A DNA stretch of 63,747 nucleotides, filler included, from Reticulomyxa filosa (lineage: Eukaryota; Protista; Foraminifera), in assembly GCA_000512085.1 (NCBI GenBank). It is 16 parts of 16 records of this genome, joined end to end, with 100 filler letters (N's around TTAATTAATTAA, not from the genome) between each part and the next. Parts side by side here need not be neighbours in the genome. Positions count along the whole stretch, not along the records: positions 15,792 to 23,535 come from ASPP01010554.1; 15 more parts are not named here. One strand, 5' to 3'. The position numbers and the translations under genes are program-made. Numbering within the stretch: the first letter of the stretch is position 1; each line of letters begins with the position of its first letter. Of this stretch, positions 15,792 to 23,535 are shown piece after piece. The notes beneath the pieces are model-generated. The model was not told the origin of the DNA. It saw only the letters and a list, made by a program, of their open reading frames with translations, and made no database searches.

Positions 15792-17852
15792 GTGTGATAA
15801 AATAACAAAGATTCGTGTTGGTATCGTGACCGATTTGTGGAAAATCCTTCGCGTGTTTGGCGAAAGCAAGCGTGAGGAATACTTGGGCACTTTGTGGGAA
15901 TTGGCATCGGAAGTTGATGCAAATTGGAGGTTCAGATTATTATTGGCGGAGTTAAGTTGTTGTTTTTTTTTGTTTTTTTTTTTTAAGGAAGAAGAAGAAG
16001 ACAGATTTGAAATAAAATAAAAAAAAAAATAACAATGAGAACGCCGTTCTGTTCTATTCTATTCTGTTTAGACAATTGGATGAGATTTGGCCATTGTACA
16101 AACCTGAACAAGTACTGGAACATTTAATGCCGCTGGCTTTCCAATTGTGCGACGATCGAATGGCTGATGTCCGAGCTGCTGCTGCGGTGCCCATTGCAGA
16201 GCTCATTCACTACTTACAAACCAAAGGAACCCCACAACAGTTGGAACTCGTCATTTCGAAATGTGATGCCATTCACAGTGCAAGGACATATTCCAAGAGA
16301 CTACTGTACTTTTTTATTTTATTTTATTTTTTTTTTGTTTTGTCAATTGGCTTATTTTTGTATGCAGAGTTTCTTGGCGTGATAAAAGGCTTTGCTTGTA
16401 GTAACAATCCACAAAAAAAAACAAAAAACCAAAAAAAAAATGTGTATATTCATAGATATATCAAATTATGTCAAGCTTGTTTGACCAGAATTGACAAAAC
16501 CCTCTTCGACGAACGCTTTTTACCCAAGTTATTGTCCTATGTGGACGATCGCGTTTCTAATGTTCGCTTTGCTTTGGCAAGATTACTGTCAACCGAGTTG
16601 TTCAAGAAAGAGCAATACGTCTCTCGACTAGATATCCAAGAGTGTGTGTCGAAACTAAAAATGATAATGAAGACGTCGAAGTAAAGAGATTCTTTGCTAC
16701 TGAAAACGAAAGTCAATAGATACACATATATGTATATGTATATACGTATACATTTTTAAAAAAAAACAACTTTCTGGTATCCTAAAAAAAAAATAAAAAA
16801 AAAAAAAAAAAAATATTATAATAATAAGTTGAGTTGTTCCTGCAAGAAAAACAAGCTTCTGCAGCAGTGGAAGTAGAGGAAGAAGGTCGCACTCAAATGG
16901 AAGTAGAAAGTTCAGAATCAGGGGTGTACTCGTCCTCAGAAGAGGTGGAAGAAATGGCCCAAGACACCATGATGAAAACTGAAGTGGGAGATACAAGCGA
17001 TGCAAACTATAATAAGACCGACGAAGCAATGGGCCATGGGAATACAAACAACGAGAACAGTAACAATGGCAACGGCGAGGACTTGAATGTGAAAGAAACA
17101 AATGAGAAAGAAAAAAAACATAAAAAACGAAAACAAAAAAAAGTCAAAGATGAAAGTAAAGACAATACCGTAGACGCATCATTGCCACCTGAAACGGAAG
17201 CAACAGAAGCGACAGAAGCGACAGAAGCAATAGAAACAGTAGAAGCGGAAGCAGAAACACAAGAAGCAGAAACACAGACACAAACGCAAACAGGAACAGA
17301 GCAAGGAGTGAAAGAATATTTGACATCGGTGGACCTTCGACAGCCTTTGCAACTTCAAGCGACTCAGGAAGACGAAATTGAACGGCAAAAAAATATTGCG
17401 GCTTATTCCGAGAGTAAACAACGCGGTGACACGTTCGAAACCGGACTTATCCATCAATCCACTCCATACAAACTTCCTGAGCTGGATGATCTAGATGACC
17501 CGGATGACCAAGACGATGATCCGGATGATGATGGAAAATTCGACGACGATGGCAGCGACAAAAGTGATGATGCTGTCACGAATTCACAGGTAACATGTTG
17601 TCTTATTTTTTTTGATTTGGGTTTGGGCTGAGTGTGACAGTGGAGAAATCAAAAAAAAAAAAAACAACAACGTAAAAGGTCACACCCAATCAAAAAGCAA
17701 ATGACTCAGTCAATTCGCAAACCAATTCAGCCAATTGGAACATTAAAAATGTTTCCAATGACATTTTAGATGAAAATCCAGAAGAAGCCAAAGATCCATC
17801 TCCTGAGGATGATATCACCCAACCAGCACAAACAAATCTTCGAAGTGGCTGA
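15792..17852 (+). CDS. PPP4R1: Ser/Thr protein phosphatase 4 regulatory subunit 1-like (PP2A-A-type HEAT repeats), 5'-partial, with an acidic C-terminal tail
   Basis: NWRFRLLLAE|QLDEIWPLYKPEQVLEHLMPLAFQLCDDRMADVR and LLSYVDDRVSNVRFALARL match recalled PP4R1 motifs (NWRFRAELAEQL..., LCADKVSSVR, NDRVPNVRVLLAK). Adding one A at 16657-16661 restores KLKNDNEDVEVKRFFA. Stop at 17850-17852. Confidence 0.8.
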
Positions 17853-18933
17853 TTTTTTAAGTTGTTTTGAGTTATTTTTCTTGCTTTTTGTTTTATTCTG
17901 ACTTTTTTTTGTTTTTTTCCTTTAAACGAACAATCCAATCATAGCAAATCGTCCCACAAAAATCATTTGTGGAATATATTTTTCTTTGATTTTTTTGTTG
18001 GATACACAAAGAAAATACTTCACTTCTACGGAGTGTGAGTGTATGCAGCTTATGTTGTTTTTTTTTTTTTAAGCTCGCTTGTGTGTATTGTTTGTGGGTT
18101 TTTTATTTATTTGCTTTTCTTGTCATCTGTACTATGTTGTGATTCGTCACAATTTATTGAAAATTTTTAATTGTTTACTATTTTGATCTTGTTGTTAGTA
18201 TACCCATTGCTTGATTTTTTTTGTTTGTTTTTTAAACCAAGTTCTTTTCACAAATTAACTTAACGTTCGGTGATAAACATATAATAGGTGATGTCGTCGG
18301 GATCATTTTGGTAAAAATGTTGACATTACAAATGCAAGTCAACTAGTTATTTTCACGTGGAAATTTAAAAGAGTAGATGAAGAAATGCAAAAAAAAACCC
18401 AAGTTTTTATACACATTTGCAAGTGTACTACATCGACTTTCTTATTATTTTTTTTTTATTACCTGTTTGTTTGTCTTCGATAATCACATGATGGACATTT
18501 TGGTGTGGGTATGTCAGCCCCAAATTTTTTCTCCTTAATTCAAACTAGCTTTGTCTGATTGACACAAGTACCTCTTTCATTCCGTAGACGAGCATTTCTG
18601 TCATACGAAGTGGTGTTGAAAATAATATCAACCACAAAAAAAAAGGTAGACGAAGCAGCGTTAAAACTCGGGTAGATAAGTTTTTCAATGACTCACTTTC
18701 TTTATAACATCGAAATTAAATATGGTGTACAAAAATAAAAACGCAAAGTAAAAAATCACAACATAAAAAATGTGACAACCATAAGCAGCGCAAAAGAAAA
18801 AAAAATCAAGTGGGTATCATTTTTTTTGGAAATTCAGCTTTTTTCACTCGCTTTTTGGAGGGTTCCCATTTTTGATCCTATGTATATTTTTGCAGTAACA
18901 CCAAATATTTCAAAACTGTAGCCTAGTTTGTTT

Positions 18934-20229
18934 TCACAATTTACTTTGCCATCCTCTCTTGTGTGGACTTTTCTCCTTAACATCAGAGTCAGGTCTTTTT
19001 CTTTTTTTTGCAGCTTTCTTTCCAGGGGCATTTGAATGGCAAACTTTGTCCTGGACAAGACTTGTGTCATTTTCTTGATCGTCACTTTTCCAATTGTGGC
19101 AATGATTCGTTGAGTCCGAGTTCACATTTTCAGCATTTGCATTCGAAACAGGTAAAGTGGTGGTTTCGCTTTTTCCATTTTTCTTGTGTTTTTCTAAAGC
19201 TCGCAAGTGCTCTTTCATTACATATAAGCACTCCCACAAACCCATTGCCTTTTGTTGTTGTTGTTGTGCATTATATTATCTCATTCAGCAAATTACTTAC
19301 TCTATTCCTCTTTCCTTTGACAATTGGGGGGGAAAAAAAAAATAGTAAATGTTGTTATTGTTGTTGCTGTTCAAGTACTCTCATGCGTTGCACGTTGTTG
19401 GTCTTTTCCAAAACTTTGTTCATTTTGTCGCGAATGGTCACACATTCTTGTTCGCGGCCTTGACGGAGTCCAACAGTAACATAGAAACCCATTAACCGAA
19501 CAAGTTTGATATTTTTATTTATTTTTTAAAGAAGAAAGAAACAACTAACCATACACAGTTTGCACATCGATTTTATCAAGTTCTTCTTGACTAAGTTCAT
19601 ATTTTCTATTTTTTTTTTTTTTTTAAAAGGGGGCTTGATGATTCAAGGGAAAAAAAAACTCTTTTAAGTGTATTTTGCATATGTTTTCTTGTAAATAACG
19701 CTTTATTTTGATTTCGGCGTTCCATTTTTTGCTCGGCTGTTATATTATCTCCAGTGTTGATGATGCACCCATTCTTCCTTTGCACATGTTCAACTTGATC
19801 ATTTTTTTCTTTAATACATCGTGGATCAATGTGTAACTTGTAAAACTCTGTTCTCAATATGCATGATATATTTCGATGACTCATAATTTGTATTAATGCT
19901 GTTTTTTTTTTTTTTTTTTTTTAACCTGCCAAAGATTGTTGACCAAACAATCTTTGAGTTTGCAAGTTCAATTGTCCACAAGTCTTAGCTGGGAAATGCT
20001 TCATTATTTGCTTCCAATTACCGCAGCCATATTTCATCACTGCAAAACGTAGGACATTAGCCTCTTCTTGACTCCAACCTATATCAAAAGGTCCATCACT
20101 TGTTTGTATGATGTTGTTTTTGGGTGATTGGACAAAAAATGAAAATGAGCACTGCTTACCTGGAGACAAAGTGAAATTCCAAAGACTTTGCGAATCTGCT
20201 GCACTTTGCCACAACGCACGGCTTGCCAT
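18934..20229 (-). CDS. p1-like (Myb/homeobox-like HTH) subunit of the MTA1c/AMT1 DNA N6-adenine methyltransferase complex
   Basis: Exons 20229-20160, 20078-19926, 19847-19700, 19605-19550, 19458-19379 and ~19248-18934, all GT-AG with matching phases. Product: SQSLWNFTLSPGWSQEEANVLRFAVMKYGCGNWKQIMKHFPAKTCGQLNLQTQRLFGQQSLAEFYKLHIDPRCIKEKNDQVEHVQRKNGCIINTGDNITAEQKMERRNQNKAKYELSQEELDKIDV. This matches recalled ciliate p1 motifs (SLWNYTLSPGW, QTQRLLGQQS, RKNNCIINTGDN). Confidence 0.8.
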
Positions 20230-20929
20230 CCTTCAATTTCACACAATTATAATACTTCTAAAGGGAGAACCGTAAAAAAGCTTTGGAAACTACGCTGAGA
20301 CTACCAATCTGTTCGACCACAAGACAAATTAATTAAACATAAAATATGCGAAAGTTAATTTAAAATTTTGTGGCTTACTGCAGCATACAATACCTGAAAA
20401 TACTTATTCTTCGCAGTAAAAATGTTTTCATTAATATTTAAAATTTTTTGCTTGAGTAGGAATATTGTTTGAAAAAAATAGCTTCAATTTAATCAATCAA
20501 AAAATTTTGGATATTATCTCAAAGCTTTTTGAAAGCAACTACATGATTGATGGCTTTTGTTGCACTTTTATACAGCTAAGATGGAACCAATATAAACTTT
20601 GATAACAAGACTTCCAAAGTTATGTCACAAATTAATTGACTTACAAATATGTAAAATATTTAAACTCCAAATTTAAATGGATTGTTTGCAACAAAGGGCC
20701 AGAAAAGATTGTTTTAAAAATCCTTAGGGGATATGACGAGCAGGTCAAAAGCATTATATATTATATATACACTTCTTTGCTGTGTTGCCGTTTTTGCTGA
20801 GAGGGAAAAAAGAAGGAAACTGTTTGTATGATGATTCTTTCCTTGTGCCAACACTGACTATATGCAGACCAGCAGAGAAGGAGAGCAGCAACTTAGAGCC
20901 GTTGTTGGGTGAGAGCAACGTAATTGCTT

Positions 20930-21424
20930 ATGAGCATGTATTTGGAGAGCCTACAACAACAACAACAACAACAACAACAATCAATGCCAGCAAATGGCAA
21001 TGGAAAAGAAAAAGAAAAAGGAAGTGAGGACACAATAAAAGCAAAGGCAGATTTACACGAAGAGCTGAAAAGCAGAGAAAAAGGCGGTAAAGTCCCCAAC
21101 GAGCCAACAACGAAAAGAAGTGTGAAAAGATCCAAAATCCGAATAGACCCCTACACTGGCGACCGCTACGTCCGTACGATTCCGCTAATGGCAACTAACG
21201 GTCCCTCTGGAGCCTTTGACACCAATTCCTATTGTTACGAAAAAGAAGTGTATTCTTCCAATGTTAATAATACAATATTTAAAAAAAAAAATAAATTACA
21301 TAAAAAAAAAATTATAAGTATTATACGTACATAAAAATATATGTGTACATTATATTTATGTGCAATTACAATAGAATGGATGTATGATACTATTTTTTTT
21401 TTAAAACTAAAACAAAAAAAAACA

Positions 21425-21455
<31 letters not shown>

Positions 21456-22780
21456 AACACATCGAAGCGTAGAACATATTTGGGAAGAGCTATGGCTCGA
21501 CGGTAGTCCCATCGCAGTCATTGGCGTGCACAAAGAAGCCGATGACAATAGCGCCATTGGACGAGGAGAGCTTGACATTGAACCGAGGTGTGACGGTGGA
21601 GACGAGTTTGGTGTCAACGAGGGACGAATCAAAGTCGGAGAGAAAGCTGACGGCGATGACAATGAAAAGAGCAAGGTCGTGGTCGGACGACCAAATGATG
21701 GGATACTCGTGGCTGGGCAAGTCGATGGGGTGGACGGACTACGTGAAGCAAGCCGCGTCCAACGTATGGCATTACCAAGTCATCGCATTGGTATTATTAT
21801 CATTGATCATTACCGGCATCGCATACGCCATGTCCATGATCACGGAGACGTCGTGGTGGTTGACCAACCAAGTCTATCAGCACTCCACTTGGAACACATA
21901 TATCCGATTGTTTGGAGTCATCATCATTCGAACACTCTTCGTTTTGGTCTCCATTTTTTTGGCACTCCATTTTGCACCGCAATGCATTGGTAGTGGAATA
22001 CCCGAGTTGAAAGCCATTTTATCTGGAATTTGGATTCGAAGTTAACACACATATATTATATATATATATATATATATAATATATGTGTGTTAAGGTTAAC
22101 GTTAATTAAATTGGATATCTTTGGAATATAGGATACTTGTCCATTCGAGTGTTTTTAATCAAAGTACTCGCATTAACGCTAGGCCTGGCCAGTGGATTGC
22201 CGATTGGAATTGAAGGGCCTTTCATTCATGTCAGTGCGATTGTCGGACGACAACTGACCAAGTGTCGCGTATTCCAACATCTTGAGCGCAAGACGCTGTT
22301 GTCCGCAGCTTGCGCCTGCGCCGTGGCCATCATTTTGAGCGCCCCCATTGGCGGCGTGCTCTTTTCCATCGAGGTCACTGGACATTACTATCAGATCAAC
22401 AGCTACTGGAGCGCCTTTGTGTGCGCCGTCATTGCCAGCATTTTCACACAGCTCGTCAGCACCGTCTCTCCGACCGCCTTGCATTTGATCCACAACGAAT
22501 TCGCAAATCACACCTACGCCAACGTCGAGTTCATTGGCTTCGCTTTGCTTGGGCTCTTCTCTGGAATCATGGGCGGGCTCTATGTCAAATGGCATCGCTA
22601 TCTTGTCCTCTTCAAAAACAAATGCAGAGTTGCTCTCTTTTTTTTTTTTTTTTTCATTCATTGATAAGTTGCATAATGTTTGTCCATTCATGTGTGATTA
22701 CGTGTGGGCATGATATCCATGCACACGATATGTACACATAATATGTCACATTATACATATATGTACACATATGTGCATAT

Positions 22781-22815
<35 letters not shown>

Positions 22816-23535
22816 TTATGACAGAGTCAAGGCACACATACAATCCTTACAAACTCATATGTTATGGCCATCATTGCCACCGGATTGTACGTGTTCTGTG
22901 TGTACTTCATGGGAGACTTTGCATTTGAACCAACTCGACGAGCTGTCACAGATCTGCTGAATGTGGACGATTTGAAACGCTGCAACCAATCTGGAAATCC
23001 CCAAGACTGTGTCTTTCAAGACTGGTTAGGTTAACGAAGCTTGAAAACAATTGCCACTAACATATACATATATATACATATATATGTATGTACATGTGTA
23101 TATGTATATAGGTCAGATCATTGGGGCGTGTTGATCAATTTGTTGTTGTTCTCCTGCGTCAACTTTGTCTTTTCATTGCTGTTTCTGATTTTGGATTGGC
23201 CTTGTGGATGTTTCGCCTCGACGTTTGCCATCGGAGCTGCCACAGGCCGTTTTTGGGGTGAGCTTCTCAACAAGGTCGGGATCTCCTTCTTGTTTTGCTT
23301 CGGAAGAGAGAAAGGAGGAGGGGGAAGGAAAGAAAAACAAATAAATGAACACACCAAAGCAAAATGACACTAACAGATTGCCAAGCACTACACACAGCAC
23401 GTGGTGGTTGCAAGACTGTATGCAGTAGTTGGCGGTGCTTCCTTTGTTGGAGCCGTCACAGGCACTTTCAGTGTGGCCGTCATCGTTGTTGAAATGACAT
23501 CACAAGCCAAAATTGCTGGTTACTTTTTTTTTTTT
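20930..23535 (+). CDS. CLC-family chloride channel, multi-exon, 3'-partial (CBS domains not reached)
   Basis: GSGIPE at 21989-22006, GIEGPFIH at ~22206, APIGGVLFSIEVT at ~22341-22379, PCGCFASTFAIGAATGR, YAVVGGASFVGAVT...VVEMT. The start codon is uncertain. Confidence 0.92.

Follow-up and report, generated by a model that had tools for sequence, protein, structure and literature searches.

The stretch of DNA analyzed here (the window, 63,747 nt) includes a part from record ASPP01010554.1 of Reticulomyxa filosa, which occupies positions 15,792 to 23,535; all coordinates below count along the whole window. On the minus strand of this part, at 18934-20229, lies an intact gene of six exons with canonical splice sites, spliced in close relatives as modelled here, which encodes a member of the p1 family. 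We consider this locus very likely to be the R. filosa ortholog of p1 (AMTP1), the non-catalytic DNA-binding subunit of the AMT1/MTA1 - AMT6/7/MTA9 - p1 - p2 complex (MTA1c) that writes symmetric ApT N6-methyladenine (6mA). Membership in the p1 family itself is established by sequence, by profile, by fold (via the closest relative) and by phylogeny. The original prediction, made from the DNA alone, had placed a p1 subunit in a probable foraminiferan. The organism was rightly guessed, as the encoded N-terminus is 100% identical to R. filosa ETO22676.1, and the p1 identity was upheld by exon-wise searches, a family profile, the fold of a close relative and a tree that places the gene in a clade with Bolivina argentea.

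Because five short AT-rich introns disrupt the frame, the listing of open reading frames (ORFs) at the locus holds only fragments, at 19921-20229, 19606-19884, 19355-19492 and 18934-19245. That introns hide the gene from such a listing had been noted in the original prediction, and all five proved to be GT-AG. The start codon, ATG at 20229, lies two codons downstream of an in-frame TGA, and the stop codon, also TGA, is at 18936-18934. The spliced coding sequence has 786 nt (261 codons) with a revised donor for intron 5, or encodes 273 aa if a downstream donor is used. Exon positions were taken from landmarks and then subjected to a splice-site check, and translation of the exons showed that the peptide given in the original prediction is the product of exons 1-4. 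In the following list, P0002 (271 aa) is the protein of the closest relative, L001 is the 1,052-nt JGI contig that encodes it as a single uninterrupted ORF, and X1 is a public sequencing run, the kind of which is off record.

20160..20229, minus strand: exon 1, the N-tail with the S-x-S-L-W-N-F-T-L-S-P motif; aligns with Tetrahymena p1 residues 12-24 and is covered by a spliced X1 contig.
20079..20159, minus strand: intron 1, 81 nt, GT-AG, in frame and stop-free; a joint in the X1 contig and a 27-codon gap in all homologs.
19926..20078, minus strand: exon 2, the Myb/homeobox-like domain with recognition helix and GQQS loop; Pfam Myb_DNA-binding at E=1.9e-7; p1 residues 24-76.
19848..19925, minus strand: intron 2, 78 nt, GT-AG, containing an A-run; placed by tblastn, L001 and X1 comparisons.
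19700..19847, minus strand: exon 3, the p1-specific extension past the Myb domain, with the RKNGCIINTGDN loop; p1 residues 79-125.
19606..19699, minus strand: intron 3, 94 nt, GT-AG; the public gene model runs into it and terminates there.
19550..19605, minus strand: exon 4, encoding KYELSQEELDKI..., the counterpart of the KYGLS helix; found by tblastn with P0002, and the X1 contig covers 19549-19596.
19459..19549, minus strand: intron 4, 91 nt, GT-AG; the X1 contig match ends at 19549.
19415..19458, minus strand: exon 5 in its revised short form, extending to 19379 if the downstream donor is used; from L001 and P0002 alignments.
19249..19414, minus strand: intron 5, 166 nt, GT-AG, or 130 nt with the alternative donor 19379|19378; placed by homology.
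18934..19248, minus strand: exon 6, with a probable helix (MGLWECLYVMKEHLRALEKH), a basic KKRKR patch within a low-complexity tail, and the TGA stop; tblastn with P0002 at E=2e-10.

Searches were run exon by exon. Against solved structures, the ORF of exons 1-2 finds Tetrahymena p1 first (chains 7f4l_E, 7yi8_C and 8xyl_C, all from MTA1c, E=4e-12 to 6e-12), with c-Myb next at E=1.6e-6 and a p2 chain at E=0.15. Exon 3 alone has significant matches to p1 chains only (residues 79-125, E=1e-5), and the exon alignments to p1 are collinear (residues 12-24, 24-76 and 79-125). When a profile was built from 25 relatives, p1 was matched at E=2.9e-70, while the best chain other than p1, a generic Myb, reached 1.9e-4 and p2 reached 2e-3, so that more than 60 orders of magnitude separate p1 from generic Myb/TRF or p2. 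Among the best 150 database matches, most have the three p1 motifs at equal spacing, and the exceptions are multi-repeat Myb proteins. On the family hidden Markov model (HMM), the exon peptides fall in order at 1-24, 26-77, 79-127, 129-145, about 153-174 and 167-272, although the scores of exons 4-6 are weak (8, about 2 or -2, and 13 bits).

P0002 stood in for the window protein in the test of fold. Its AlphaFold model has a predicted local distance difference test (pLDDT) score above 90 over about residues 30-140, followed by two long helices at 151-178 and 182-197. The fold search with this model returned 9u9e_C, p1 in DNA-bound MTA1c, at E=3.5e-12 over 173 columns and 9o6k_C, AMTP1, at E=4e-10, with p2 chains next at about 1e-2; the match spans 158-173 columns of the p1 chains.

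These searches also bear on a plainer explanation, that the gene encodes an ordinary Myb/SANT transcription factor with a single repeat, which would be unrelated to DNA methylation and resemble p1 in the Myb fold alone. Such a reading would suit the public name of the protein, "Myb-like domain-containing protein", and the fact that Pfam detects Myb_DNA-binding alone: on the remaining ORF pieces of the gene it finds nothing except Myb on exon 2, and exon 3 lies outside Pfam domains. A Myb repeat (Pfam PF00249) is indeed present, but conserved p1-specific segments stand on both sides of it. Ahead of it the N-tail motif matches p1, and beyond it exon 3 matches p1 alone, as the original prediction had expected when it proposed a likeness that goes past the generic Myb fold. 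Together with the width of the profile gap and the extent of the P0002 fold match, this makes an ordinary Myb factor highly improbable. The outcome named at the outset as damaging to p1, best hits among generic SANT/Myb proteins, did not occur in the searches with exons 1-2, exon 3, the profile or the fold, all of which place p1 first.

The motifs that the original prediction gave for p1 (SLWNYTLSPGW, QTQRLLGQQS, RKNNCIINTGDN and YGLS) all occur in Tetrahymena p1, with order and spacing unchanged. In R. filosa, the N-tail motif S-x-S-L-W-N-x-T-L-S-P-G-W, which corresponds to p1 residues 12-25, reads DSQSLWNFTLSPGW across exon 1 and the start of exon 2, and its columns are invariant across the 25 relatives. 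The third helix and following loop, Q-x-x-x-Q-T-Q-R-x-x-G-Q-Q-S, reads GQLNLQTQRLFGQQS in exon 2, and the post-Myb loop, R-K-N-x-C-I-I-N-T-G-D-N, reads RKNGCIINTGDN in exon 3. In Tetrahymena p1, S13 and S15 contact MTA1 and deletion of the N-tail abolishes activity, while in the loop K101 and N107 contact the DNA backbone and D110 and N111 contact MTA9 (PMC12485025). The C-terminal helices of Tetrahymena p1 ("HTH") dock on p2 and the MTA1 N-helix. With contacts defined by the Tetrahymena structures (PMC12485025), the residues of R. filosa were read off the exon 1-2 and exon 3 alignments as follows.

S13, S15 (MTA1 contact): both kept in R. filosa.
K44, W45, K46 (DNA contact): W45 and K46 kept; K44 is N.
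Q61, Y63, M64, R68 (DNA contact): Q61 and R68 kept; Y63/M64 are N/L.
Q73, S74 (DNA contact): both kept.
K101, N103, N107 (DNA contact): K101 and N107 kept; N103 is G.
D110, N111 (MTA9 contact): both kept.
K114, R117, K118 (DNA contact): K114 is A, R117 is K and K118 is M.

We also placed the gene in a maximum-likelihood tree of the N-terminal 200 residues, in which the public protein P0001 represents the window gene. R. filosa groups with P0002 (support 99/97), the pair sits inside a 100/100 clade with both Bolivina argentea sequences, and the fungal sequences form a separate 100/99 clade, a pattern that indicates vertical inheritance of an ortholog.

The exon model draws on relatives. When four of them were compared with this piece by tblastn, the gaps fell exactly at introns 1 and 2, and with P0002, the closest, exons 4, 5 and 6 were also recovered. 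The DNA of L001 aligns in blocks at 20229-20159, 20049-19928, 19848-19702, 19453-19413 and 19246-19187. The last two abut in L001, where P0002 reads ...IRDKMNKVMGLWE... free of gaps, and we therefore place the donor of intron 5 at AAA|GT (19415|19414), which leaves a junction with a single-base difference from L001. Our first choice of donor, AGA|GT at 19379|19378, lies 36 nt downstream and gives 273 aa; it was replaced after the DNA and protein alignments with L001 and P0002, and the longer form that it yields may still be an alternative. The end of L001 merits a separate remark. Its ORF stops at 906, and within 880-1052 the sequence that follows resembles the ...KRPDSD... tail of the window (blastn, 905-925 against 19008-18989), which suggests either a frameshift at an A-run in the contig or a real C-terminal difference.

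Run X1 contributes a 473-nt contig, 90-95% alike, that aligns to the minus strand and spans exons 1, 2, 3 and 4. A joint at 20076->20158 skips the 81 nt of intron 1, introns 2 and 3 are skipped in register, and the match ends at 19549 with a 22-nt loose end that, but for 4 mismatches, looks like the start of exon 5. Since three introns are exactly missing and the break falls at the donor of the fourth, this contig appears to be a processed transcript of a close relative or of another strain. That it breaks off at the donor of exon 4 is consistent with intron 4, in the interior of which the acceptor is the sole AG, besides a TTAG four bases in. A second X1 contig, of 151 nt, aligns to 18981-19108 and resumes at 18874, so that 106 nt, the p1 stop codon among them, are left out. 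We set this joint (18981->18874) aside, as it has non-canonical ends and a far side of 21 nt, and is probably due to divergence or chance.

An exhaustive HMMER search with the ORF of exons 1-2 returned P0001 (198 aa), which is 100% identical over residues 1-101 and which an exact look-up identified as ETO22676.1, hypothetical protein RFI_14517 of R. filosa. UniProt carries it as X6N9E0 under the "Myb-like" name, just as the original prediction had guessed of automated annotation. Three errors separate this model from ours. Intron 1 is retained, because it is in frame and stop-free, which adds 27 spurious residues; an acceptor about 25 nt into intron 2 adds 17 more; and the model runs into intron 3 and terminates there, so that exons 4-6 are absent. 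Corrected, RFI_14517 becomes a p1 of about 261 aa instead of a 198-aa "hypothetical/Myb-like" protein. Other short-intron genes in the R. filosa assembly may have errors of the same sort.

Comparison with relatives also reports on constraint. Against L001, the proportion of synonymous sites that differ (pS) is about 0.74, which is saturated, and the nonsynonymous proportion (pN) is about 0.10-0.13 for exons 1-5; we give pN/pS (0.13-0.17 for these exons) instead of dS because the synonymous sites are saturated. In the X1 contig, 12 of the 16 listed differences are at third codon positions (P=8e-4). Judged by these substitutions, the p1 gene is under purifying selection. This speaks to the suggestion that the locus is a pseudogene or an assembly artefact, with exons that belong to a decayed or chimeric, unexpressed copy. 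The broken public gene model and the lack of any R. filosa RNA run among those found would agree with that suggestion. However, an in-frame intron together with mis-splicing accounts for the broken model. None of the six exons is interrupted by a stop, each of the five introns has GT-AG ends, homologs have matching starts and stops, and differences from two relatives fall predominantly at synonymous sites. We regard a decayed or chimeric copy as very hard to credit.

Set beside known systems, the R. filosa gene keeps the element order of Tetrahymena thermophila p1/AMTP1 (PDB 7f4l, 7yi8, 8xyl, 9u9e and 9o6k): the N-tail S-x-S-LWN-x-TLSPGW, a homeobox/Myb-like domain with Q...QTQR..GQQS, an RKN-x-CIINTGDN loop, a KY-x-LS helix, a putative C-terminal helical segment and a low-complexity tail. 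The two proteins share the residues that contact MTA1 and MTA9. R. filosa p1 is the shorter, at 261 aa (273 with the other donor) against 309-364 residues in the solved Tetrahymena constructs, and has far less of the acidic C-terminal region. Two residues are missing from the loop ahead of the recognition helix, KH-FP-x-K in place of ES-GCLPGK, a deletion common to all six members of the foraminiferal clade in alignment A1. These include Bolivina argentea EP01084_P033812 and P145963 and the environmental proteins P0002, P0004 and P0017, which fall in the same 100/100 clade. Over exons 1-2 the Bolivina and environmental relatives are 63-87% identical to R. filosa, whereas the C-terminal tails are unrelated in sequence; P0002 is nearly equal to R. 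filosa p1 in length. One of the Bolivina proteins, B. argentea EP01084_P145963 (P0008), reaches 603 aa through a C-terminal addition of about 400 residues without likeness to other p1 proteins; either a fusion or a chimeric transcript assembly could account for it.

Genetic studies of MTA1c exist for the Mucor lusitanicus group. The p1 of these early-diverging fungi (M. lusitanicus OAD01843.1) belongs to the same family, with the same motifs as R. filosa, over its N-terminal 145 residues, but the fungal homologs form a separate, fully supported clade and have the longer GCLP-type loop, unlike R. filosa. The p2/AMTP2 subunit of MTA1c has a homeobox-like core too, and is matched weakly by profile (E=2e-3) and by fold (about 1e-2). 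The R. filosa gene, in contrast, has three elements that p2 does not, namely the N-tail motif, the RKN..INTGDN loop and the KYGLS helix, and is plainly a p1 rather than a p2.

If the Tetrahymena structures are taken as a guide, the N-tail of R. filosa p1 would run along the AMT1 methyltransferase domain, the homeobox-like domain would insert its third helix into the major groove, the RKNGCIINTGDN loop would contact both the DNA backbone and AMT6/7, and the C-terminal helices would dock on p2 and the AMT1 N-helix. As in the ciliate structures and biochemistry, p1 would thereby clamp duplex DNA onto the AMT1-AMT6/7 catalytic dimer. We further propose that R. filosa would methylate ApT sites downstream of the transcription start sites (TSSs) of active genes; 6mA in the species is plausible.

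Published distributions agree with this proposal. In a survey of 231 eukaryotic proteomes, Romero Charria et al. (Nat Genet 2025, PMC12695648) score Reticulomyxa_filosa (NCBI proteome) as AMT1=1, AMT6/7=1 and 0 for every other MT-A70 family; their supplementary table gives no score for p2. According to the same paper (PMC12695648), p1 and p2 were searched by BLASTP in the proteome set that holds R. filosa and co-occur exclusively with AMT1, with Trichomonas as an AMT1-only exception. All AMT1-encoding species profiled there showed TSS-proximal ApT 6mA, and the 18 nanopore-profiled species include no rhizarian (PMC12695648). Since all of the conserved N-terminal region is contained in the 198-aa public protein, the p1 search of that study very probably found the R. 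filosa protein. Full-text literature searches returned no 6mA measurement for foraminifera or any rhizarian, and a mention of Reticulomyxa solely in a survey from 2015 on the phyletic patterns of methylases. The novelty claimed in the original prediction was overstated in this light: p1 and p2 had already been sought in a set including R. filosa and were reported only with AMT1, although its claim stands to the extent that our searches found no rhizarian 6mA measurement. A p1 gene in R. filosa is an expected finding, because its catalytic partners were already listed for the species, and the biology is as published distributions predict.

Several results weigh against p1 as a working subunit of such a complex, or against details of the gene model. 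The C-terminal third is poorly conserved: exon 6 alone has no match in the PDB, exon 5 alone has only chance matches to haemagglutinin HA2 (E>=0.1), and exon 6 is under much weaker constraint than the exons before it (pN/pS = 0.47 against L001). The fold evidence comes from the relative P0002. A search of public sequencing runs returned a single run, X1, with 5% of the words, and no RNA run of R. filosa; the spliced contigs are those of relatives, and the donor of intron 5 was placed by homology. Several basic DNA-contact residues differ from Tetrahymena p1 (K44 = N, K114 = A, K118 = M). The base-contacting Y63/M64 are replaced as well, though N-L is the consensus of the whole family and the ciliate state is therefore the derived one at these positions. 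Finally, the presence of AMT1 and AMT6/7 in R. filosa is taken from a published table.

Some of these points would also be expected if the gene were a relic or repurposed p1, that is, a true descendant of p1 in an organism that either has no AMT1-dependent 6mA or makes 6mA without p1, and in which the protein has another role in chromatin or transcription. The altered basic DNA contacts would fit, as would the fact that exceptions to co-occurrence exist, since Trichomonas is reported in the published survey to have AMT1 without AMT6/7, p1 or p2. So would the facts that p2 was not located, though no search for it was made, and that literature searches turned up no rhizarian 6mA measurement. On the other hand, the contact residues for MTA1 (S13 and S15) and MTA9 (D110 and N111) persist, purifying selection on the N-terminal region is strong, and the survey scores R. 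filosa as having AMT1 and AMT6/7 and reports p1 only in AMT1 genomes. We judge a relic p1 to be unlikely and favor a p1 subunit that still serves 6mA deposition. Beyond the identity of the gene, we think it probable that Foraminifera, and so Rhizaria, keep a complete and working AMT1-AMT6/7-p1-p2 writer together with symmetric ApT 6mA downstream of the TSSs of active genes.

If true, this would be the first such 6mA case in Rhizaria, and the organism concerned is multinucleate, its genome unusually large and rich in repeats. The R. filosa gene represents neither a new mechanism nor an unexpected distribution; for this lineage, the pathway had so far been no more than a table entry. Foraminifera have retained p1 under constraint in at least two lineages, Reticulomyxa and Bolivina, and so have environmental relatives, which lends weight to the published proposal of an AMT1 pathway already present in the last eukaryotic common ancestor. 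Experimental maps of 6mA lack Rhizaria, and Reticulomyxa would be a reasonable species for closing that gap.

Three other features were noted in this part of the window, all on the plus strand.

15792-16684, plus strand: fragmentary ORFs for a HEAT-repeat protein (Pfam HEAT, weak at E=2e-4, under the curated cut-off).
16834-17631, plus strand: an acidic ORF of 265 aa without a Pfam match.
21521-23535, plus strand: a multi-exon CLC chloride-channel gene that extends past the end of the piece.

The piece begins inside the HEAT-repeat gene, which is also broken up by an AT-rich stretch that looks like an intron. Within the acidic ORF, tandem repeats of 9, 15 and 21 nt at 17193-17283 encode T-E-A / E-A-E-T-Q repeats. 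In the CLC gene, the ORF pieces at 22137-22664 and 23041-23367 match Pfam Voltage_CLC (E=1.7e-30 and 6e-7, respectively), the piece at 21521-22045 carries a GSGIPE motif, and the introns contain (AT)n and (TA)n microsatellites at 22051-22084 and 22752-22812.

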